From Bugula neritina (taxonomy: Eukaryota; Animalia; Bryozoa): a DNA stretch of 64,000 nucleotides. The stretch covers positions 10,902,722-10,966,721 of the forward strand of contig OZ037766.1 of the NCBI GenBank assembly GCA_964035545.1, in the 5' to 3' direction. Under the pieces are notes generated by a model. It was not told the origin of the DNA, made no database searches, and worked only from the letters and a program-made list of their open reading frames with translations. A program made the position numbers and the translations under genes. Positions 5-61,000 of this stretch are shown one piece after another. Each line of letters opens with the position of its first letter. Position 1 is the stretch's first letter.

Positions 5-3000
5 TCAACCCAATATCGAAACTTGCCTACATGAGCGTAGTAATAAAAGAAATATAACAAATTGCGGTACTTACTTTATGGTACCGGTTGGAGAGGGGGG
101 TGTAGTAGTACTTGTAAATTTCACAGACGTTTCACTAGTGGGTTTGGTTCTCAAACTAAAATATTAAAAACATACCAGATGACAACTTGCTTGTTATTAT
201 GACAAAAATATTGTTCTAATCATTACTAAGTAAAACATACTGTAAAACACCATTTAAAATTTCTGAAAAAGCTACAATGAGTTGGAATTTGTTTTATGAT
301 CAATTCATAAAAAAAATTACTTTACTTTAAATAATGTATTATTTTAAATACTTTATATAGCACATAATTCTTAAACTATTGAGACATAGTGTCAACCAGT
401 TTACTTTGCCCTGACCTTGTAGATGGTACTGTCGTAGTGAAACAAGGCACACGATTTCCTTTGTCATTGCAACAGAAATTGTTTTCTATTTGGTGTACTT
501 GAAGTGGGTCAGCAGTACATTGGGGAAGATGGCTGAAGACATGCAGTTTGACTCCTGGAGCTGTTATTGTTTTGTTGTAGTCTTCACAGACAGAGTCACC
601 TGGTTCCAACAAGTATGTATATCAAAGTTAATGCTAAGCTTACATTCATTACCTTATTTACTATTCCTAGCATTAAAACAACAAACTCAGCTTGAAAAGT
701 GGAAAACATCCTTTACTTCTAGCCAGCCTCTTATAACTAATTTGCTTATTTTTACTATATATACATATATACAATATATAAAACCAAGAAGCTATTATTA
801 CTCTAAAATTTACAATTTGTTGTTGCAATTGCTTGGGGTTTTGTTATATACGCTTGTGCAATTTCTATAGTATTGTAACTTATTTTTAAAATCATGTTTA
901 ATAGTGCAAGAAAAATAGTTAGAAGTAGGATTTTTTTATTTTGCAATCACCAGTTCAGATTTTATGAAATAGTTGTATAGCACAAGAAGTTACTCCATCC
1001 ACTAACTGAAAAGTCCTAGATCCAAACTCCGAGTTAAGAGACAAAATATGGTAGCTATAAAAATTCAGTTGTTAAATATGTCGTGAATTGTGGCACATAA
1101 TATATAACCTTGACTTTGTGGTTATTTATTTAACATAGGTTTCAGCTTCTTTCTGTTTTAATTGAATGTAACCACTAATTAGAAAAAACTCAACTTCATT
1201 TAAAGTCCCTAATCCTGTAAGAAACTCTGATGGTAGGAGTTTTATGCAGCCTTATAGGGGCAGTGCTGCTCAAACCACTTTAGTTGGGTTTCGGGTAGTT
1301 CAAAGTAGTACAGCAGGAATGATGACTGCACCAATAAATCACTATGAATTCGCACTTATGAACTAGTGTGTAGGCTAAGCCAGTGCTTTAATTACCAATA
1401 TGCACTGAGGCTGTTCTCTGAATGGCCATTTATGAAATACTAAATATAAATAAATTGCTAAACTTGAAAGCAATGTTAAAAGTCTCAGTTTTTTTAAAAT
1501 CAAATACGATATACAACATTTTAATAATATTATATTTAATAATTATGTGCCATGCTTAAACCATACGCTGCATAAAACAATATTATAGCTGCTTATTATG
1601 TGTCATAATAAATAAAATACCTAGAGGCTTCAGCAGCTGGGGTCGCTGACTGGGGTCAAGTTGAAGGTACTTGAGGAAGTCATTCCTTGTGACAATCATA
1701 TCCAAATCGTCACTACTGCTCACCCTTGTAACAACGTCTGCAAATAAATTCATAACTGCTATACCAATTTTGCATCACATCTCTTTTTTTCTGTAAAATT
1801 ATATGTTATTTTGGATAACCAGCTTTAATCTAGTTTTATATAGTAGTATGACTTGTTTGGCAATCGTCTTACATAATCTGACGTAGCAGTATAATACTAA
1901 ATTAAGCATTTTATACTTTAGTCTGATGCAAGAGTGCAACCACAACATGATTTTCCACAAATAAATACATTTTTAGGCAGTTTTAATTTTGAATAATTTG
2001 CCATACAATAAACCCCCACCTCTATATTAGAGGTAAATGTTTATACAATTATTAGATAAAACATAACAAAAAAGCACACTTACAAAGTTGACAAAATTCC
2101 GTACACCTGGCTTCGGCAAACGAGCATGCTGACTTTTTAGATGACAACGGCAAGGTAATAGCATAAGGTAGCTGAGGAATGATAGTTGGAAATGTTTTAG
2201 AGATATGGTAAGAACCTTGCTGTCTAAACCCTAAAGAACAGGTGCATTGAAAAGATGTTGGGGTGGTAGATACTGTGATTGTTGATAAAGTTGATGGTTC
2301 AGTTGTTGGTTTAGTTGTTGGCTGAGTGGTTGGCCTAGTAGTTGGTTTAGTGGTTGGCCTAGTTGTTGGTTTATTAGTTGGCCTAGTAGTTGGTTTAGTG
2401 GTTGGTTTAGTGGTTGGTCTGGTAGTTGGGTGAGTGGTTGGCCTAGTAGTTGGTTTAGTGGTTGGCCTAGTTGTTGGTTTATTAGTTGGCCTAGTAGTTG
2501 GTTTAGTGGTTGATTTAGTGGTTGGTCTGGTAGTTGGTTTAGTGGTTGGTTTAGTTGTTGGCTTAGTTGTTGGTTGAGTGGTTGGCCTAGTAGTTGGTTT
2601 AGTGGTTGGTTTAGTGGTTGGTTTAGTGGTTGGCCTGGTGGTTGGTTTAGTGGTTGGCCTAGTGGTTGGTTTAAAGGTTGGTTTATTAGTTGGCCTAGTA
2701 GTTGGTTTAGTGGTTGGCCTGGTAGTTGGTTTAGTGGTTGGCCTAGTGGTTGGTTTAAAGGTTGGTTTATTAGTTGGCCTAGTAGTTGGTTTAGTGGTTG
2801 GTTGAGTGGTTGGCCTAGTAGTTGGTTTAGTGGTTGGTTTAGTGGTTGGCCTGGTAGTTGGTTTAGTGGTTGGCCTAGTGGTTGGTTTAAAGGTTGGTTT
2901 ATTAGTTGGCCTAGTAGTTGGTTTAGTTGTTGGTTGAGTGGTTGGCCTAGTAGTTGGTTTAGTGGTTGGTTTAGTGGTTGGTTTAGTGGTTGGCCTGGTA

Positions 3001-5177
3001 GTTGGTTTAGTGGTTGGCCTAGTGGTTGGTTTAAAGGTTGGTTTATTAGTTGGCCTAGTAGTTGGTTTAGTGGTTGGTTGAGTGGTTGGCCTGGTAGTTG
3101 GTTTAGTGGTTGGTTTAGTTGTTGGCTTAGTTGTTGGTTGAGTGGTTGGCCTAGTAGTTGGTTTAGTGGTTGGTTGAGTGGTTGGCCTGGTAGTTGGTTT
3201 AGTGGTTGGTTTAGTTGTTGGTTGAGTGGTTGGTTTAATGGTTGGCTTGGTAGTTTGTTCAATGATTGGTGGTGGAAAAGTTTTTGATACAGGTTTAATT
3301 GGCACAGGAAGGGCGCTGAGTTTGGTTGTCAATTCTTCTTGCTGTTCTGTATGCTGCACTGTTGTGGTGGTCAAATTTTCTGTGAAGCCAGTATTATCAG
3401 AGCCAATGGTGGTGGGAATCAATGGCCACTTCAGTTCCTCTTCAGCGTTAATCAGCTCTGCAACATTTCAGGCAAATTTTATAGCATTTTTATTTGTTGT
3501 TGAAATAAATGTGTACCTCCAGCAACACTATCTTTTTTGTTTGCTCACAATAGGATAGCAATAAAAACTATATAGATTGAATGCTTTAAGCTGTATTTAC
3601 AGAATTCAAAATACTAACTAAGAATATTTTTTCATGATGCTTCGCATAAAACAGAACTAGTTATATGACAGAAAATAATATGGTATAAGGACTTGATACT
3701 AAAATTTAATAATATTTCTAAAACTGGAAGATAAAGAGTTGTCTGATGTGCACAACAATAAATAACAGAATTCTTTATAACGAATAATTAGCAAATTTTA
3801 AATTGGTGAAGAAGGATGGCTTGACAAATAATTTTAACAGATAAAGATCTTACAAATGCTGAAAATGAAAAATGATGACTATTGAAGCGGTTTCTATTGA
3901 CTTTAATCTCAAAAAAACATCATTATTTTAAACAGCTTCAAACTTGAACATATCAAATCTTGTCAACAATTCATTTTAATAAGTGGTAAAAGTTAACAAC
4001 TGAAACCCATACATGAAACCAGCAGCCTATATATTTCATTGACGGCCACAAACAATCACCACATCTTCTATTCAAATATTGGTAAAACAGTAACTGCAAG
4101 TGAATTACATACTAGTACTATAGTCAAGAAGTAAATCACTCTGCTGCCATGTATCCTTGCCATTATGTTCAAAACGGAATTTGTATGCAGTGGTGTCACC
4201 ATCAAACGTTAAGGGCACTGGCTGAGCCTCAAATATCTTGTTGCCACAAAAATATGGAGACGATGAAAAAATCGGTTCATTAACACCATTTTTCTGGTGC
4301 CAGATCTGCAGTGTTGTACTACATTCAATAAAATCTATCATCTGCAACATATGTAACAACTTCATCATTAATAAATCATGTAACTTCATCGTGAATACAG
4401 AGTTATAATACAAATTGAAAAGTTGTGTGCTTTATATAATTAAAAAAGTCTAACCGAAATTGGTTCATGGGGAAATTTTATCATTAAACAATTGTAACAA
4501 CTGTGTAAAGTAGGTCTATATAATTATTAGCTTTTAGAAACAAGAATGTGCCTAAAGACTTCTAGGCACATTTTTGTTTAAAAAAATATTTAGCAGATTT
4601 AAATATGTTATACTTTAAGAGTAAAAACATACAATAAGGCGTATATGCAGAGATAGGCCTTTTCCAGCTACCAGTCTAACTTCACAGCTATTAGGGATAG
4701 AACCTGTGACATCGCCATCTGACTGCAGGCTGACAAATCCATTTACTGATGACTCACCAAGAACTACTGTCTCCGCACACTTATCAAGAAGTTTCACTAT
4801 AACGTAGCAACAAATAAGTCTTTCAATAAGTGTAATAAAAATAGAATACATCTTTTCTATAATCTGGATTATATTTTGCTATAAGTAAGGCAGGCAGCTT
4901 GACATATAATACTGGAAATGCTAGTCTATAAAACAGCATATAATATATATTTCTTTCTCACCTTTCTTCGCCATTTTTTGATCAGGTGGCGAAGCATACA
5001 ATATATATAAATTTTGCAATTTGGATTTTATATTTTTGCCGAAGCAGCTCTGTTGAACCTGCAGGTCTGCTTAATATTTGTAATTAAAGTAGTATTATAA
5101 GACTTACCATCAAATGTCTGCAAGGAAGAGCCGGCATTAAAAATACCAAACAGCAAGAGTAACAGTTTAAAAGCCAT
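5..5177 (-). CDS. Secreted mucin-like protein: signal peptide, CUB-like Cys domain, PTT(K/R/Q) repeat, C-terminal Cys-rich domain
   Basis: Phase-consistent exons 5177-5108 (MAFKLLLLLFGIFNAGSSLQTFD), 4796-4633, 4341-4113, 3457-2084 (repeat exon), 1737-1621, 599-416, 155-75, 26-5 (TGA). All GT-AG. The last two exons are less certain. Confidence 0.8.
2300..3250 (-). repeat. Coding 12-bp tandem repeat (GGTTTAGTGGTT variants) encoding PTTK/PTTR/PTTQ/PTNK/PTFK
   Basis: Visible 12-bp periodicity; ORF 2052-3422. The overlapping ORFs in other frames are by-products of the repeat. Confidence 0.95.
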
Positions 5178-32100: not shown

Positions 32101-35100
32101 TGCAGAGTTGATGTGTTAACCTGTGTATCACACTAACTAACATCATACACTTGTTTTATCTTATCTCAATAACTTCTCCGAGCTTTCCTCACTGACTAAA
32201 GTACTTTGAATTAATTAATTATAATTGGCAGGATTCCATAAACAGCTTATTGGTTCTTCCTAAATATAGTATGCTTTACAAATTTCTTTTTACACGTTTT
32301 TTAGACTACCTTGTTTATATATTATCCCAAACTTTGAATTAAATTTGCTTTACATGAGACTGCCACATGTCAACTTCAGTGTGAATATCCTAGAGACCTA
32401 GACCTTGCGGTCATATGACCTAGTTATCAATGGGCAGCTGCTACGTATCAAGTTTACTACTTTACAATTTCTAGATGCAGCCTGTAGTTTCAAGATATTT
32501 TGACAGTGTCATGATATACTGTTCCTGTAGGATAACTGAATTTGTTTACTTTTCTTAGGAATTGATTTAACTATAATGATTAATTTAGAAAATTCGTGAT
32601 GAAAGTATAGCAGCAATATGAGTATGTAGTAGAAAGGGAAAATTTATTTTGTCACTCTAATGAAGAAAAGGGGAGGGTCTCTTGTGCTTTAAATATTTTA
32701 AGGAATTGCAACTTGCAATGGATGCACCAGGGCTTATCATTTATCACTGATTAACTACTGAAATTATCAGCTTCAAACAGAATTTTATGAAAGTAGCTGT
32801 TAAAGAGGATGTTGCTGAGGTGAATGTTACTCCCTGTACTAATGTGAAGCATGCTTTTTGTAGGGAGGGATGAAAGCGGTCATGTACACGGATTTGCTGC
32901 AGATCATCATCATGTTTGCTGGTATGATAGCTGTAGTAATAAAAGGCTCCATGGACGTCGGTGGGTTTGGTGAAGTTTGGCGCATTGCTGGAGAAGGTGA
33001 TAGGTTAGAGCTTTTCAAGTGAGTTTCTTTAAACATTGCTTTTAGGTAGTGAGTTCTAAAGGTGACTTACTGGCAAACTATAACTGTAAAGATAGTGGCT
33101 GGCCCAGTTGCGAGAAAAATGTAAGACATGATTTATAGGAAGTTGAACAAATTGAATAGAACAGTTTCAAAATAACCTGCTTTGAAATTCAGTCACGTTA
33201 TTTTCAAAAATTTTCTAGAGCAATGTTTGAACGCAAGTCACGTATACTTAATGCAATAATGTAATGTTGTGATTAGCATAGTAATGGATTAGTTTATTTT
33301 TTGTCTAAAGGTAACTAAATATCGTATACCATTAAAATGTAGCTCTTGCGTAATTATTGCAGCAATACTATTGCTCCCAGCTGCATAGCCAGTATTGAGT
33401 TTTATTTGTTTGTCCCTTAATAATAATATATAAGCTACTTAAACGCGAAGCAACTTATTTTTTACAGTTAGCTATTGCGTTTATTTCTTCTATGTATTTC
33501 TATAGGGCAAAAAACAAAAACACAAGCTCCGGTTGCTCAGAAAATAGATTATGAAAACAAAATTAAGTGTTTGTATATACGCGTACATGTTTTGTAACAA
33601 ATGTTTGGCATGTAACTAGTCTATTGTATAAAACTACTATTACTCCCAGGCTTAGTTAGTGGTACCCTAGAATTTCAAGATACCCCTCTACAATATATAT
33701 GCTCTACATTACAGCATTAGGAAATAGAATATAAGGGAGCAGCCGTGGTCTAGGGGTTAGAGCGTGGTCTAGGGGTTAGAGCGTTTGCCTAGTAAACACG
33801 GAGTCATGGGTTTGAACCCTAGTAAAGGCCATTGGTGATGTTAGAAAGAGCATCCAGTCATAATTGCTCCTGTGCCACATCTTAAATTCCCTTAAATTTT
33901 CTCGTATGTATGTTTTTTTCGTGTCAAATAGACGATTTCGTGTGATTCTCACAATGGTGAGGCCAGGCCTTTAGTCCTTAGCTCCATTTAACAAAAACCC
34001 CTTCCTTTCAGGGGCTCTCACAGGGATGGCGACTATAAACTTGCATGAGGTTATTAATGAATTGGTATATAAATACATTATAACAGTATAACATCAAGAT
34101 ACGGGATATATTGTAAATAAAGATAATATCTCCTAAATTTTTCCCCAGTTCCCCTCAAGCTCCGGTTTGGGTACCTCTCAGTTATACAAAGTATTTTAAC
34201 CTCTGGTATTCTACTGGTACAGTCAGTTTATTAAAATTGATTTGCTGTGGATTAGTTGTTCTACTGAGTGTGGCATAGCCTTAATTTGAAAGTAGAACTT
34301 TAATAAGTAGCTAGACATGGCTCATTTTTAGTGAGTCTTTTAGACCCACTCAGCACACATCAAGTGCCTGCTGGTAATGAGGCATTGTTTCTGTAAATAA
34401 AGCTTTCAAATTTTCTTTTGTAACAAAAGCTCTCTGAAAGTCTTATTGATGAATGTTTTTTACTCGGTTAGTAATAGAACCCCACTTATTCAATTAACTC
34501 TCAAATATTTCAAGATAACTGAATACACGATGGGTTGTTTGTGTCCAGTTGCTATCATTTATCCTAATGTTTCAGCTTCGATCCAGACCCTAGAGTTCGA
34601 CACACTTTTTGGACTTTGACGTTTGGAGCTACTTTCACTTGGCTAGCTATTTATGCAGTAAATCAAGCTCAAGTACAGAGGGCTCTGTCCACACCGTCCC
34701 TGAGACATGCTCAGATGTGAGTTGCACTCAGTCTAATATATTAAATCTGTCCTTGATTATTTATTCACAATATAACATGGTGTTCCTACTAGTTTTCCTT
34801 TGAAGGCTTGCAGCCTAAAAAGTAGAGTTCTTTCAAAAGTATAGTGAGATGACATGCCTCTAAATTATTACTTATGTTAGATATATGATAGACTAAAGTT
34901 GTAGCTAAAAATATAAAATAAGTTGCGTGCACACCCTTCATAGCATATAGCAAACTGTTTATATGCATAAGCATATTGAAAAATGCAAGCTCAAGGAAAA
35001 TTATTCAAATTTATTCATGACTTGATTTTTAGACTTCTTTATTGTATATTGTATTTTACTGAAATTCTTAGTTTTTATTTGTCTCCCCATGCTAATAGCT

Positions 35101-38100
35101 CTGCAACTACAAAAACTATACAAAGAACTATTATAATAGCTTTATGTTATGTGATTTATGTATCAAGTATGGGAACATTTTCCAACACCATTTTTCTCAA
35201 ACCTGATGGTACAATGAACTTGTCAAAGAGGGCATGTCCACATTAAATCATGTTTGTGAAAACTATGGCTATTGAAACCAGTGTCACCAAAACCTAGGTA
35301 GAAATACATTGTGGTGGTGAGGTTTTTTGAAGATGTCATTTTCTGGGTGGCATAATTTTGTGATTCAATAGGAATAGAAGATAAGCTTGTTTGCTTAAGC
35401 TGCTCAGCTACTAAGCATTTGCTGGTTTGAGACGTCACGGTTTTAAAAAATATGACGTAAAGCTGCTTTCTACTGAATTGTCCCATCAAGAGCAGGCTAT
35501 CTGATGAGTCATTCTCACTCTATAGTGACTTTCGGAATAACTCAAACCTACTGTGTGGCTACCATTTTTAGTTACATTTTTAGTTGTAAATTACTACCAT
35601 AGCTAAATGTGCTTATAGGGTGCACCAGGGGGTACTCAGTGTAGCGTGGAGTGACCGCTTAGGAAAGTACTCCACCATTTTAGGGTGGGGCTAATGTGCA
35701 GTTGATAGGGGCCAACTTTATGCTGCTAAGAGGCGTTGTTACATTTCAACTTGGCTGAAGGCATCTTATTTTCTTCACATTTCATTTAACAGCTATTAAT
35801 CATTGAGTCCATTTTCAGCTCACTAAAAAAACTTAGGTTTATTTTGATTTTGATTTGATTTACTAACGTTTAGATTTTATCATTTCTCTGCATTCTATGA
35901 TAAACATTAATCTGTAAGTAATTTTTCTATGTATTTAATATAACATTTTATAAATTTTCAGAATTCATTTAGGACTAAAGCTATTAAATATCACTTTCTA
36001 CTCATGCTGAATATACTATTTTAGTAATGAACTGTTGGCAACTAGCTGAAAATAGAACAATATAAAAAGCATGTGTTGATTGACTAATAATATTGAAAGC
36101 ATCTGAAAATGTATCCATGTAGCTAAAAATTATTAAAATTAAACTCTGTTTTGGCTAGTTTCCTAAAAATAAATAGAGTTGCCTTCTTTTTAACTAGCTC
36201 CGCATGTCTCTAGACAAATAGAAAGGGCGAAAAGTTTTCTACTCAATAAAGTATATTGTAGCAGAGGTATTTTATGTAGATTATGTTGCATTTAATGAAG
36301 CCAAATTAATTATGTGGTTACTATTAACACATCAGTATATGCATTGTATTGTTCTCTCTATAGTTATAAGTTATACATAACTAATTATTGTCATTATTTT
36401 TGTTACTCATGTTGCTTATATTTATTATTATTGGTTGATTAATAACTTTTACTATAATCAATTTTAGTATTTTTACTGGTACTATTAGTATTAGAAATTA
36501 TTATAATTTAAGAAAAAGTAAAAAAGCTCAATATATAGTTATTGGAATTAAAAAAAATGTTATTAATATTTGAATAAGCATAATTATATTATAATATTTA
36601 TCTCCATTGTACTTGCTATAATATTATATCATAAATATTTTTTACTATTTAAATATTGCTTTCAATAATATTTGAATAATAAAAATATCTATTTAATTTG
36701 TTACTAGAATTTTTGTGATGCTTCTCAGTCAGTGTCTGTTGTGTTGTTCCTACATATGCAGGATACGAGTATGGAATGGCTACAGACTGTTGTGATAACT
36801 TGTTATATTAAGTTGGTTATACTTAGAAAGATAGATGTTTCTCTAATATTTCAATTTTATTATTTTAAGTTATTTAGTATTTAGAGTATTGAGCTAGAGG
36901 TTTATGGTCTTTATGTAAAATATTATATAATATTACTTTTTGTAAATGCACTAATTCAGAGTTGTCTTTTCGAAGTGATTTTATTTTACAAGTTGTAGTT
37001 GTCTTCTTTTTGCAAGGGAAAGCAACTTCTTATTTAGTAAATGTGCAAAGCCCATACAAAATCAGATCATATAAAGGTTTATTGAAGTGAATTAACCTAA
37101 TATTTTGTATTCAACTAATATTTTGGTAATGGGAGGTGTGGCCTAGTGGTTAGGGCTCTATACAATTTTGCGCTAGGTCAGGGGTTTGGATCCCAGCAAG
37201 GTCATAGGTGATCTCAGGATGAGCATCCAATCATAATTGATCCTCTGCCAGCTTGAGAAAGTCCTTTCTCACAGGATGGAGATTTCAGACAAAACATGAG
37301 AGATAATTATTTTGTGGTTATCAGTTACCATCTTTGTAGCTCAAATATTTTAATATATAGATGTAGCTCACCCTTCCAAAGGCATTTACAAATGTATACG
37401 ATGTTCATGGTAAACTTTTTTATTGTGAAACTGATTGCTCTGATCAACATGTTCAGATAAAAAAATTATAGAAATAATGGTTTTATATATAATACTTTTA
37501 AGTTAAAGCTATTTACATTTAGTAAATAATGTGGGGTATGTACAGGTTCAGAAGTTACACTGAGTAAAAATAGAAAAATATGAACAATAAATGCACAATA
37601 TTAAGTTGATTGGGATTTGCATGATTAAATAAATCTGACTAGTTTACATAATAAATAACAATTTGGAATGACAACCAATTATTTCAAATACAAAGTAGGT
37701 CACCCTTCATTCCTCCAAATAGAAATAATATCTTGCGTTGAGGGAGTCGTCTTCTTTCTAGCGGCTTGCTGAGCTAGTATGTAAGTATCGATATTAAAGG
37801 AGGTTGGTCCATTTAATAAATTCTGACGTGAAGTTCTGTGATGATGTCTAATAGGATTGGAGTGTTGGTTATCATAAGTATCTAGTTGTTGTCTGATAGA
37901 GTTCAGGGTTATCTCCACTTCGTCTGTCTCCAGATTCTCCTGTAGTAGTAGCTGTTCAGCTGTTAAACTTTCTGTAGCACTTGAGGAGTCTATATTTAAA
38001 TTTGTTACTGGATTCATTTCTGTTCCTCTTTTGATGCGAGTTTGAATGTGTCTGGCTTCCATAACTCCTAAGAGAGTTAACATTGTGACTCCCTTGAGTA

Positions 38101-41100
38101 ACCTGCAATCACAAAACATTCAATGTTAGTTGGGTTTTTCTAAATTACAAATAGAATTATAAGAATTCAAATCAATTGACTCGCACATTGTTCCATCAAA
38201 GTGCTAACAAACCCTCACAAATTTACACTATTTTTGAAAAGATTAAACAGTATCATTTTAACAGCCAGTATTAGCCTATTTTTGCAGCATTTTAGTAAAC
38301 CAGTTATTATTCTAAATTGTGGAGGGAACAGTTGTTTTAGTAGTCGCATGTCTTTATAGATAAATCTGAAAATCAATTATACTGTTTTGCTGTACATAAT
38401 ATGCAGGTTTTATGATACATGGTTTTAACATACCACATTAAAAATTTTATTCAAATTAACTTTATAGACAGTTTTTTTATTTAAGAGGAACAATATTTTA
38501 TTTACATACCAACTTAGAAAGACTACACTCAAAATAAGGTTTATAATATCTAATCTAAATTAGCCATTTTATTATATTTACTATAATTATTTAACATTCT
38601 TTCTCTACTGTTAAACTTCACAGTTCAGTATTTATACTAGAAATATGCATTAGCTGAGTTGCATGTTTATAGAAATTCTAAAACTTTGTTTATTATGACT
38701 TCCCACTATATGCTACAGCTAGCTAGCTGCTTTTAAAAAGCCTTTTTAAAAAGTTAAAAGAATTTATTAGGAAACTTTTATTTATAAATATAAAATTGAT
38801 TTCAAAAACAGACATAAAAGGAAAACGTTACTTGATTTCATATTAAGGTATATAATTGTTGATGAGAATGGCAAAGTATTTCTTCTCAAAATAGATTATT
38901 TCTGTCATAAATTACTCACCACAAAAACAAGTTTGAAGAATGCAGGCTGTGATGGTTCATGTTTTTGTTATAAGCGCAACGTATGTCTTACGGAGGTACT
39001 TTCCAGAATCTGAATGACCCAGCCCACCGCTGTGCTGCACTTATATATTGCTGCAGTGGATCTACAATTAGCTGTACACACTTAACTCACTACCAAATTA
39101 TAATCATTGAGTTACTAAAAATAGAAACAATTGAAGTATTTATGGCACTCTTTCTAACCAATACAAGACCATGACATAAGTTAGATTGGTACAACACGCT
39201 GTTCGTTGTCTCCCCTTTTGTCTCCGCAACTGTGAAGTGCAGACGTTACTTATCTCAGTATGGCGCAATGTCATTTGTGACATTGAGAAAACTTCAAGAG
39301 TTCAGGCACCATTGTATACCTGTAACTCGTACATTCTTGTTGGTACTTATTTTTAGTAAATTAGAGCTAAGCTGGCATACTGAATAATGTAAGAATGCCA
39401 AACGGGTCAAAGAGCCATTTTTAAAGTTTACAGCCTAAATATTTGAAATATATTTCCTGTAAAATATCCACCTACATTCACCTAAGTTTTTAATGCAAAT
39501 AACGTTACTAATAATAAATTGAAATGCTGGAGCAACAAAATTGTATTTGTTGTATTCATTTTTAAACTTAATTTGTTTTTGTAACATGGTAATTTTATGA
39601 TTTTCTCCTATAAACATTTAAACAACTTTTTGTAAAGTAGAATGTGAAACTTGTAAACCAAAAACTATGCATTTTTGCTACAAATTATTTTTAAGTAATT
39701 ATTTGATAAGTGTGTAACAATAGCATCAAATTGTATTATATGCAGTTCATATTTGAAACTATATTTCAGATGAATGCATTTATATTAAATTGTAGTATAC
39801 CATACTTAGCATACATAAACTTTTATGCTTTGCTTGATTTGCAGTATATATTCCAATACTTGAGTGTAATGCTTTCAGTTATACATGTACTGTTGATACA
39901 CATGTTTCCATATGTAAAAAATTCTAATATAGTATATTCTATATACTATTATGTGTATGGTAATAAATGAGGGGCTCATACCAATGTTTCTCTTCTTCCT
40001 TTAAAATCTGATCCAAATACAAGGCAGTGGAACTATAACGCTTAATATTCAAAAATGTAACTTTTCCTGATATATGAACATGAATACTTTACATTAAATT
40101 TAGTCGCATGAATTCCAATAATGTTTGATTCATTATATATCTTTGGCTCAGTTTTGACCTAGATATTTGTGATTTTATCACACTGGGTTTGGAAATGTCT
40201 CTGTATATATCTTTATCATGTACTTCTAGTAGGGTATAAACCAGCTCTGGTCAGCCTGTAAATTGTTGACATTTTAACTGTGAGGTGTTCAGATACAATC
40301 CACTTGACTTGAAGGCGTTTAGGGCTCCTATTTCTAATCTATACAACCCATCATTCACCAACATTTTGATGAGTGTTTTGTGACTTTTAGAGTGTGTTCT
40401 CCAAGTATTTTGGTCAGCTAGATGAAGTATAATGAACATAAATGATTGTATGTTGAAAAATATTTACATGAATGAGTTTTTGTTTAAAAACTAAAACTAT
40501 TGTTTTGGTTTGTTACACTTTAGTTAAGGTCAAACCATTAGTGCATGCAGTAGATTCAGATACAAGTTCTGTTACTTTTTGAGGATTTTATCATTTTTAT
40601 AATACTTACATTAGTTTTTGTTTTGACAAAGACATAGTAATCGGTTAGAAAAGATTAACAGTTCCTCGTTTTGCTTTTTTATGATATTATCTGTATAATA
40701 TTTTGCCATAGTAGTTATATATTATGTACAAAAAAAGGATATAAATTTTGTAGAGCTATATATTTAAACATACCTGGTTTGATTGGTCTACTTGTGGTCA
40801 CCGTAGGCTGTGGTCTTGTCATCTATGCTAACTATAAGGGCTGTGACCCAGTCACCCTTAAAAGAGTTGTTTCTGCTGACCAGGTAAGCCATACAACAGT
40901 TTTAATTATATGTTGCATTTTATGTCACACTTTTTACTCAACCATTTGTGCATTTTTAATAGCTTCTGTTTTATTTTGGAAATATAACGAGAAACTATGC
41001 ACTGCTCAAATCTAACACCAAAGTAGTCCTAGCAAATTTTGATTTTTTTTTTCACCATCATCAACAAAATAGTAGCGTGGAACTCTTTTACTGGCATTGA

Positions 41101-58000: not shown

Positions 58001-61000
58001 AATATTTTAGCATATCACTACAGGTGGGGGGGGAGCGTAGAGAGAGGCATTGATATTACCTGTTAGCAACAGCTATTCTTGCCGCTTCTTCAGACTCCTT
58101 TGCTAACTTCTCCTGCTGCTTTTTTAGTAGTTCTTCTTCTTTTGCTGCCTTTTCTTGTTGATACTTCGTATTTCGGGCCTCTCTGACAAAAAATGTTATG
58201 ATCTCATCTTTACAATATAATATCTAATAACCAACTCAAAGCTGGAGAAAATAGCATTTAATTTTTAGCTAGACATACCTATCCTTTCGTATTTGCTCTT
58301 TAACCTTTTCCCTAGCAATTCTTGTTTCTTCTTTTTCCTTTCGCAAAGCATCCCTGGTTTCCTTAGCTTCCTTTTCAGCCTGATATTGTTTCAACTTTTC
58401 AAGATCTTTACCCATGCGCCGTCTTTCAATTTCAGCAGCTTGAGCTTTCTGCCAAAAAACATGCTGTAATAACCAGGTTACATTCTGCGTGCATTACGTG
58501 CAGCAGCGTGTGAAAGGTACGTACCTGTTTTTCTTCCTCTAGTTTTTGTTTCTGTTTCTCTTCAATCAATTCTTTTACTCTACAACATACATGTTATACT
58601 AATCAAAACACATGTAATCATTCATTATATTAGTGATACCCACATGTAGCTCCAGTGATATTAACTATGTATATTGCCAGTATACCTCTGAACTTTCTCA
58701 TCTAAATTCTCTGCCGTACTGTCTCCAACTGCTCCACCGACAGCACCTTCAGACTCTGATGCCACTGCTAGAAATCACAAATTGGAGCAAATTCTATTGT
58801 GCTGAACCGGTAAACACACGGCCAAACCTTAATTAGTGCAACAAAATGTTTACATGAGTTAGCAAAAATTAAATAGCTCTAAAAAATTGCCCCAAACAGT
58901 GTCTATGATGTCCAATTGTCAATTAGTAAACCTAACAATTAATCATTAATCATAAAGTAGAAAACTAGTCTGAGTATTCAGGACCTCGTACAAAGACCCA
59001 ACATATCAATTGCTATGACTTTATTCCCCACTAGCTATAATTTTATTTTATTTCAAGTTTCTAAAATATATGACACAATTTATACCATCAACAAAGTTTT
59101 ATTTCATATGTGATATAAAGATGTTATTTTTTAGATTAGTTCTGATTAAAACAGAGAAAAATACTTGAGAGGTATTTTAAACAATATTATGAGTATGAAC
59201 TATATTATTATGTATATGTTATATAATATGCATATGTATATGTTATATGAATATGTTATATGAATTAAACGTATTACCAGTTGCACTTTGTGGAGAGGGA
59301 GAGACAGATGGTTCTGCTGTTGGTTGAACAGGTTCTGGCTGTTCTGGGCTCTGCTGTTCAGATGGTCTCTGTGTATTATAAATAAATAATACCCTAAATT
59401 CAACTGTTAAGGCTTTTCAGCAGCATATCAAAAGTTAATATTTTGTGCTTTAAAATAATATTACTTGGAAATTAAAAGTGGTAAATTGTATTGCAGCACA
59501 GATTGTGTTTTAGTTTGTTGTCTTCAGTGAACCCTGAACTTAAAGCCAAGATATGTGAAGTGTTGCTATATTATATCATACTAAAATATGCTACCTTTAC
59601 ATTTACTACTACTACCACTACTACTACCACTACTACGACCACTACTACTACCACTACTACTACCACTACTACTACTATCACTACTACTATCACTACTACT
59701 ACCACTACTACTACTACTACCACTACTACTACTATCACTACTACTAGCACTACTACTAGCACTACTACTACCACTACTACTACCACTACTACTACTATCA
59801 CTACTACTATCACTACTACTACCACTACTACTACTACTACCACTACTACTACTATCACTACTACTAGCACTACTACTAGCACTACTACTAGCACTACTAC
59901 TAGCACTACTATTAGCACTACTACTACCACTACTACTAGCACTACTACTACTACTACTACTAGCACTACTACTACCACTACTACCACCACTACTACCACC
60001 ACTACTACCACCACTACTACCACCACTACTACCACCACTACTACCACCACTACCACGACCACTACTACCACCACTACCACGACCACTACTACTACCACTA
60101 CCACGACCACTATTACTACCACTATCACTACTACTACTACTACTACCACTACTACTACTACTACTACCACTACTACTACTACTACCACTACTACTACCGC
60201 CACTACTACTGCTACTACTACCGCTACTACTACCGCTACTACTACCGCTACTACCACCGCTACCACTACCGCTATTACTACCGCTATTACTACCGCTACC
60301 ACTACCGCTACCACTACCGCTACCACTACCGCTACCACTACCGCTACTACTACCACTACTACCACTACTACTACTACCACTACCACTACCACCACCACTA
60401 CTACCACCACCACCACCACCACCACCACCACTACCACTACTACCACTACTACCACCACTACTACCACCACTACCACGACCACTACTACCACCACTACCAT
60501 GACCACTATTACTACCACTACCACTACTACTACCACTACCACTACTACTATCACTACTACTACTACTACTGATGCTGCTGCAGCAAAATCCTAAAGAAAA
60601 TCACCTGTGGCAATGTTGATAATGCTTTTTCCATTAACTCTTCTTTTAGACAGCAGCCCAGCGTAACAAGAAGCTGTCCATTTGAGCTGATGAAATGTGT
60701 GCTGGGAATTGAAGTGACGGTGTCTAGAAAATCTTAAGGAAACTTAACGAAATTACTGCTACATCTAATTTAACAAGTAGCCGGGCAATACTTTCAAAAT
60801 TTAAACCACTAAGCTACATTATATAGACTTACATAGAGCATGCAACTTCTAATAAAGTGATAAAAAGGATACAAATCTGTGAGAATTGTTGTCCACCAAT
60901 GCTACAAAAACAAAATCAAAATGATTCTGGTTGACATGCTACCAAGTAACTACTCTGCTTTATATAACATTATCTGCGAATAGTCGAGTTTGAAATCTCA

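Follow-up and report, generated by a model that had tools for sequence, protein, structure and literature searches.

A two-exon gene for a putative signalling-peptide precursor, nested antisense in an SLC5 transporter intron of the bryozoan Bugula neritina

We analysed a stretch of 64,000 nucleotides (nt) of Bugula neritina DNA (contig OZ037766.1, positions 10,902,722 to 10,966,721 of assembly GCA_964035545.1), called the window below and numbered from its first letter. The forward strand of the window carries a gene for a sodium:solute symporter of the SSF/SLC5 family. On the opposite strand, within a single intron of this host gene, lies a small second gene (the nested gene), which an earlier note had proposed from the sequence alone to be a complete unit with a TATA box, an initiator, two exons and an AATAAA signal and to encode a neuropeptide precursor. 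Reading the sequence directly, we found every element of that gene model on the minus strand at the positions given for it (Table 1). The nested unit extends from about 39047 to 37417, and each of the two genes is represented by its own spliced RNA contigs. The nested gene is a single-copy, two-exon protein-coding gene of a Bugula-type bryozoan. Opposite-strand nested intronic genes are common in animal genomes, and this one resembles the others in being a full promoter-to-poly(A) unit with both genes expressed; nothing in the arrangement is unusual.

Table 1. Features of the nested gene and its surroundings, in window coordinates (L002, genomic contig of the sister lineage; UTR, untranslated region).
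Feature	Positions	Strand	Basis or remark
Host intron of the SSF/SLC5 sodium:solute symporter gene, 6037 nt	34717-40753	+	contains the whole nested gene
Conserved block upstream of the TATA box	39041-39640	-	identity to L002 compared with neighbouring intron (see text)
TATA box TATATAAG	39047-39040	-	direct read; identical in L002
Initiator-like TCATTC	39017-39012	-	direct read; identical in L002
Predicted start site (initiator A)	39015	-	32 nt past the first T of the TATA box; outside RNA contig coverage
Predicted 5' UTR, 55 nt, no upstream ATG	39015-38961	-	placed from the initiator position
First ATG, A at -3	38960	-	direct read; kept in L002
Exon 1 coding part, 41 nt (13 codons + 2 bases), predicted start of signal peptide	38960-38920	-	GTGAGT donor follows
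Nested-gene intron of 817 nt with GT..AG ends, lying between the second and third bases of a codon	38919-38103	-	skipped in RNA contigs of two studies
Acceptor ..TTGCAG	ends 38103	-	direct read; kept in L002
Exon 2 coding part, 133 residues + stop	38102-37700	-	open frame to TGA at 37702-37700
Exon 2 share of predicted signal peptide, residues 14-30	38102-38054	-	hydrophobicity
R-I-K-R, furin/convertase-type site, residues 36-39	38038-38027	-	sequence
Acidic spacer propeptide, residues 40-102	38026-37838	-	sequence
R-x-x-R processing site (RTSR), residues 103-106	37837-37826	-	sequence and haplotypes
Predicted 40-residue mature peptide, Gln first, ..W-R-N-E last	37825-37706	-	protein invariant in four haplotypes
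Internal R-K-K, possible extra cleavage site	37759-37751	-	a cut would leave peptides of 22 and 15 residues, the latter amidated
Gly codon (predicted amide donor) + TGA stop	37705-37700	-	direct read
3' UTR	37699-37417	-	RNA contigs end at 37417 (X4, X5) or 37428 (X3)
AATAAA	37424-37419	-	direct read; kept in L002

The structure of the nested gene was evaluated against RNA by comparing the stretch 35200-41100 with contigs of four public sequencing runs from four studies (X1, X3, X4 and X5). These contigs belong to a sister lineage (see below) rather than to the window's own haplotype, and they carry no information on strand, expression level, tissue or true transcript ends. Transcript contigs of 711 nt were found in X4 and X5 (two studies) and one of 653 nt in X3 (a third study). 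All of them cover the stretch from 37417 or 37428 to 38100, and those of X4 and X5 resume at 38918-38945 after a skip of 817 nt. Read on the plus strand, the skipped segment has CT..AC ends, which correspond to GT..AG on the minus strand; with two bases of play in where the cut falls, the junction lies at 38920/38102. The phase-matched joining of the two exons that the earlier note had drawn is correct to the base, and a spliced transcript, on which that note had made its model depend, does exist for the nested gene. Of exon 1 only 28 nt are covered by the contigs, and the ATG and the start site lie beyond them; the ATG at 38960 is the probable start given its conservation in the sister lineage and its position as the first AUG after the initiator. 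At the other end of the gene, the contigs do not resolve the true poly(A) site.

The comparison also covered the host gene. Its exon 40754-40883 occurs in separate long contigs of the same runs, the flanks of which leave the window at both exon ends, and the 5' flank of these contigs matches 34687-34716. Between these matches the intron begins with GT at 34717 and ends with AG at 40752-40753. The host contigs are spliced, so that the runs compared contain spliced RNA, and they place the host intron at 34717-40753, as the earlier note had proposed. The host exons match the Pfam SSF profile (PF00474). No contig in the runs compared covers the intron of the nested gene or the remainder of the host intron. 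The X1 run, labelled 'symbiont metagenome', yielded the host exon and short repeat-like pieces and no transcript of the nested gene. More broadly, ten RNA-type runs of the organism from three studies contain part of the stretch.

The two-exon model gives a precursor of 147 residues. The corresponding entry in the list of open reading frames (ORFs; 37700-38119, 139 amino acids) opens in intron sequence, from which its first six residues come, so that the earlier note was right to say that the ORF track misses the true start.

The sole related protein in public collections (P0001, 95-96% identity) comes from two genomic Logan contigs, L002 and L003, which share about 89% DNA identity with the window overall and represent a divergent haplotype or a sibling lineage. 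Relative to the assembly (34687-40783), public reads that carry the name of this organism show differences of about 11% in introns and of 4-5% in exons, and all RNA contigs that we compared fall in this other lineage. Such a pattern would fit a cryptic species complex.

Comparison of the window with L002 gave a footprint that follows the gene model. Identity was 95% in both the coding part of exon 1 and the 3' UTR, 99.2% (125/126) across the codons of the predicted peptide, the Gly and the stop (37700-37825), and 94% in the remainder of exon 2, falling to 87%, with indels, in the nested intron and to 74% just past the poly(A) signal. L002 preserves each signal of the model, from the TATA box and initiator through the ATG, the splice donor and the acceptor to AATAAA. 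Over the whole frame there are 10 synonymous differences in about 95 sites against 6 non-synonymous differences in about 343 sites (pS 0.105 and pN 0.0175, the proportions of synonymous and non-synonymous sites that differ by the Nei-Gojobori method), a roughly sixfold higher density of synonymous change (Fisher p 0.0004). In the 106 upstream codons, 9 synonymous and 6 non-synonymous differences were counted (pS 0.133, pN 0.024); the last 41 codons hold a single synonymous difference, in a Tyr codon, and no non-synonymous one. We are nearly certain that the gene is real and coding.

Four haplotypes could be compared at the protein level: the window, the L002/L003 lineage and two more from the RNA contigs. 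Among them we counted about ten amino-acid-changing events, one of which is the deletion of a whole codon, and all of them precede the last 41 codons (p 0.038). Most of the amino acid differences, together with the one-codon deletion, lie in the acidic spacer. R-I-K-R is unchanged in all haplotypes, with one synonymous change at codon 36. At the R-x-x-R site the window has RTSR, L002/L003 have RILR and the RNA contigs have RISR. The Arg residues at either end are thus constant and only the middle pair varies, which is the pattern expected of a processing site in front of a functional peptide. The Gly codon and the stop are kept throughout. The C-terminal peptide and its Gly, the conservation of which the earlier note had also made a test of its model, are therefore invariant in four haplotypes of one species complex, and the 40-residue peptide is, on this comparison of sequences, the most constrained part of the precursor.

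A conserved block of about 600 nt lies upstream of the TATA box. Its identity to L002 is 93-98%, compared with 72-87% in the neighbouring intron, and it is covered by no transcript contig, Rfam family or repeat. It is probably the promoter/enhancer region of the nested gene. An explanation of the region as a repeat or an RNA family was rejected by the Rfam and repeat checks. On the other side of the nested gene, short pieces of many unrelated contigs (30-50 nt, 90-95% alike) match the window at 37199-37250 and 36622-36651, some of them at high depth from the 'symbiont metagenome' run. Both places probably belong to a small dispersed repeat that lies within the host intron, shortly beyond the 3' end of the nested gene.

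The layout of the predicted product resembles that of a prohormone, and the arrangement described in the earlier note is present: a hydrophobic N-terminus, a basic site, an acidic spacer, an R-x-x-R site and a peptide that begins with Gln and ends in Gly-stop. The only hydrophobic segment of the protein spans residues 11-28 (Kyte-Doolittle peak 1.95), with candidate signal cleavage after residue 26 or 30, and the N-terminus is compatible with a signal peptide, though not a textbook one. The segment 40-106, comprising the spacer and R-x-x-R, has a net charge of -7, and the peptide itself has a net charge of +1 and contains neither Cys nor repeats. An AlphaFold model of exon 2-encoded sequence showed no stable fold (mean pLDDT, the predicted local distance difference test score, 39.5); the absence of a fold in the model would be expected of a propeptide, yet is no evidence in itself.

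With these features, a signal peptide of about 30 residues would bring the 147-residue precursor into the secretory pathway, where convertases would cut behind R-I-K-R and behind R-x-x-R and the acidic spacer would be discarded. The N-terminal Gln of the 40-residue C-terminal product could then cyclise to pyroglutamate and the Gly could give a C-terminal amide. Alternatively, R-K-K may also be cut, which would yield a 22-mer and an amidated 15-mer. The released peptide would act as an extracellular signal on a receptor. We infer the secretion, processing, amidation, neuronal or endocrine expression and signalling role of the product, and with them the name neuropeptide, from the sequence. Cleavage at sites of this kind has a precedent, as mass spectrometry (MS) in other lophotrochozoans confirmed monobasic cleavage at an Arg that is preceded, 3-6 positions before it, by another basic residue (PMC8557429), and the R-x-x-R site shares this arrangement with the lineage-restricted spiralian peptides of that study (Thiel et al., 2021).

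Profile searches of the genome also bear on the processing machinery. The family 7B2 (PF05281) had one match above the cut-off, and copper type II monooxygenase domains were found at many loci, PHM and DBH-like members not being separated by the search. These PHM/DBH-like domains occur at 24 places, several of them in tandem arrays (for example C3:32009414-32022322, C4:5716422-5730349, C9:5516342-5544697 and C5:12637422-12646775), an unusually large family for an animal with a genome of this size.

Searches for relatives of the product were made with the exon 2 product and the peptide region as queries, exon 1 (13 residues) being too short to search. A word-indexed search of 5.8 billion proteins and an exhaustive phmmer search of 1.84 billion representative proteins both returned no relative except the sister allele P0001, and a feature search of the ESM Atlas with the exon 2 product and the peptide part found nothing. 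Comparisons with Pfam and with solved structures were likewise empty. A search of the 216 Mb genome for paralogues found none, so the gene is single-copy. Public collections hold the nested gene only as a mis-started ORF.

The gene is also missing from the published list of 11 B. neritina neuropeptide and peptide-hormone precursors (Wong et al., 2016, PMC4990251), which comprises FDSIG-like, pedal/orcokinin-like, vasopressin-like, NPF and GPB5 precursors and six insulin-like ones. Corticotropin-type peptides, ELH and diuretic hormone go unmentioned in that paper. That study is the only dedicated bryozoan survey and states that most neuropeptide transcripts escaped it (PMC4990251). The nested gene shares with the published precursors the organism group and the design of a signal peptide with basic cleavage sites, whereas its peptide resembles none of theirs. 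The genome encodes the published Bugula vasopressin-like peptide exactly. This peptide is encoded twice, in identical DNA on the same strand 7 kb apart (C5:7281486-7281520 and C5:7288519-7288553), either because the vasopressin/neurophysin gene was recently duplicated in tandem or because the assembly contains a duplication.

Peptides restricted to single lineages have been described elsewhere among spiralians, for example LKFL in phoronids and the ND peptide and PSLamide in nemerteans, each specific to its group (Thiel et al., 2021, PMC8557429). Like the nested gene, these combine a prohormone layout with no detectable relatives beyond a narrow clade; they are backed by peptidomics and by several species, whereas the nested gene is backed by sequence and RNA from one species complex. 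As a type the gene is ordinary: a small predicted precursor of a secreted peptide, lying antisense within a host intron. By its sequence the gene is an orphan. The fallback that the earlier note had allowed, a new family, fits the evidence. The gene may have arisen de novo in the SLC5 intron in the bugulid lineage and been recruited as a secreted signal.

Taken together, the nested gene probably encodes a prohormone-type or signalling-peptide precursor. Several observations weigh against this assignment. The hydrophobic core of the N-terminus is only moderate, has a Lys inside it and has no basic residue near the N-terminus, and Met stands at -3 of the best signal cleavage site. The ATG and the 5' end are outside RNA coverage. 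The number of substitutions behind the contrast in constraint between peptide and spacer is small, no match in another species was found in any protein collection searched, and a C-terminal Glu-amide would be unusual.

A first alternative is that the product is secreted but is not a hormone, being instead a protein or peptide of defence, of an adhesive or matrix, or of larval settlement, in which neither the C-terminal Gly nor the basic sites would serve the predicted purpose. The transcript was found in all ten RNA-type runs listed, which is easier to explain for a broadly or strongly expressed gene than for one active in a few neurons, and our searches found no family resemblance to any neuropeptide. 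Neuropeptide transcripts of Bugula are rare in whole-larva data (PMC4990251). Against this, the constraint is centred between R-x-x-R and Gly-stop, and the Arg residues are kept as their neighbours change, as is expected of a processed peptide. The charge of +1 and the lack of an amphipathic signal are unlike a typical cationic antimicrobial peptide, and there are no Cys residues or repeats. We regard a non-hormonal secreted product as unlikely.

The earlier note had gone further and inferred, as one of two readings, that the peptide is a divergent member of the family of CRH, urocortin, sauvagine, DH44 and ELH, in which case it would be expected to act on a class B1 receptor of the CRF/DH44 type. 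The layout agrees with such an assignment in that a single long peptide (40 residues, compared with 36-46 in the family) lies C-terminally in the precursor between basic sites with a Gly as amide donor; the 40 residues between R-x-x-R and Gly-stop are of the size and in the position of the family's peptides, and amidation is predicted. Sauvagine also begins with pyroglutamate. A P-x-S-hydrophobic-N-I-D motif near the N-terminus of the peptide resembles that of the CRH/DH44/ELH family, which we take as a lead and not as a test, and the LAQQA stretch lies about 12 residues nearer to the N-terminal motif than in CRF-family peptides. Because of this shift the two resemblances are not colinear.

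Direct searches did not support a place in this family. The profile search against ELH/DH44-type families that the earlier note had proposed was made with hmmscan, using the exon 2 product and 41- and 45-residue pieces of the C-terminus, and gave no match to Pfam CRF (PF00473) or ELH (PF02323) at E values up to 10. A six-frame search of the genome with PF00473 did not return the nested locus even as a candidate; the four weak matches that it did return are unrelated and without precursor features, and were rejected. The PF02323 profile had no match anywhere in the genome and was silent in control genomes too. When the peptide was compared by phmmer with every chain in the Protein Data Bank, where CRF-family peptides are expected to be represented, 0 matches were obtained at E values up to 10. 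The feature search of the ESM Atlas described above likewise returned no family member. The peptide is not notably amphipathic, unlike the members of the family: its maximum hydrophobic moment of 0.52 was matched by 919 of 2000 shuffles, a weak method. Its middle, again unlike theirs, is interrupted by Pro, Gly and R-K-K. In the low-confidence AlphaFold model, two short helices are split at K-K-T-T-P, and Gly-Pro at peptide positions 6-7 and Pro at position 29 break the helix.

We also evaluated the receptors with which such a ligand would be paired. Five class-B1-like receptor loci were found in the genome and were classed by the best solved-structure match of one exon per locus, that encoding the third transmembrane segment (TM3), and not by phylogeny. 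Four of the five exons had their best matches with secretin/PTH, calcitonin, PAC1 and adhesion/GHRH receptors, respectively, and CRF receptors, where present, were 7-15 bits behind. In the fifth (C4:6843565 region), GLP-1/VIP/PTH receptors were best and CRF receptor 2 was only 4 bits behind, a margin that does not separate the subfamilies. On these single TM3 exons, a CRF receptor is the first match for none of the five loci. Two HRM loci (C1:9898616 and C4:5506083) proved to be latrophilin-like adhesion receptors and C3:31882732 a G-type adhesion receptor. In addition, at least nine intronless 7tm_2 genes (class B/adhesion-like, with frames of about 700 residues) lie within 85 kb at C2:6302208-6386374.

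The distribution of the family among lophotrochozoans leaves some room for such a ligand. DH44/ELH propeptides have been found in nemerteans and not in brachiopods or phoronids, although DH44/ELH receptors are part of the conserved lophotrochozoan set (PMC8557429). Because the ligand has not been found in these lophophorates while the receptors are conserved, a very divergent ligand is conceivable. With neither profile nor pairwise similarity to the family, we nonetheless consider it quite improbable that the peptide is a divergent CRH/DH44/ELH member acting on a CRF/DH44-type receptor, and just as doubtful that it represents, in extremely divergent form, the DH44/ELH-type class B1 ligand that has yet to be found in lophophorates.

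A small intracellular protein, with an N-terminus that is not a cleaved signal or with a start at a later Met, would account for the non-canonical features of the signal peptide and would be compatible with an exon 1 ATG outside the RNA contigs. However, no ATG precedes the one at 38960 in the predicted mRNA, and this ATG is conserved and has A at -3; exon 1 joins exon 2 in frame, and no fold was predicted. On this explanation, which we consider very improbable, the arrangement of the basic sites and of the terminal Gly would have to be fortuitous. A non-coding or spurious transcript with a chance open frame has in its favour the lack of homologues in the collections searched and a composition under which about 0.33 frames of such length are expected in the window, so that ORF length alone is weak evidence; splicing in frame across the junction, the conservation footprint, a lone inter-lineage indel of exactly one codon and the synonymous excess make a chance origin of the frame untenable.

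Elsewhere in the window, the longest stop-free frames (471 and 369 codons) lie at 2055-3467 on the minus strand and at 59485-60600 on both strands. Both stretches are open on both strands and have a strong GC skew (+0.47 and -0.28 to -0.36, respectively), which suggests low-complexity repetitive coding sequence, possibly mucin-like.

Bryozoans are among the least explored phyla for peptide signalling. The nested gene illustrates how gene callers miss genes of this type, as its true start lies in an exon with 41 nt of coding sequence while the public ORF begins in an intron. A validated gene model for a long, predicted amidated peptide without detectable relatives provides a concrete candidate ligand that can be synthesised and used in receptor deorphanisation and in research on how the larvae of this major fouling organism settle. 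Should the peptide prove to be a class B1 ligand, it would inform the question of what became of lophophorate DH44/ELH ligands and would show how far such a ligand can drift.

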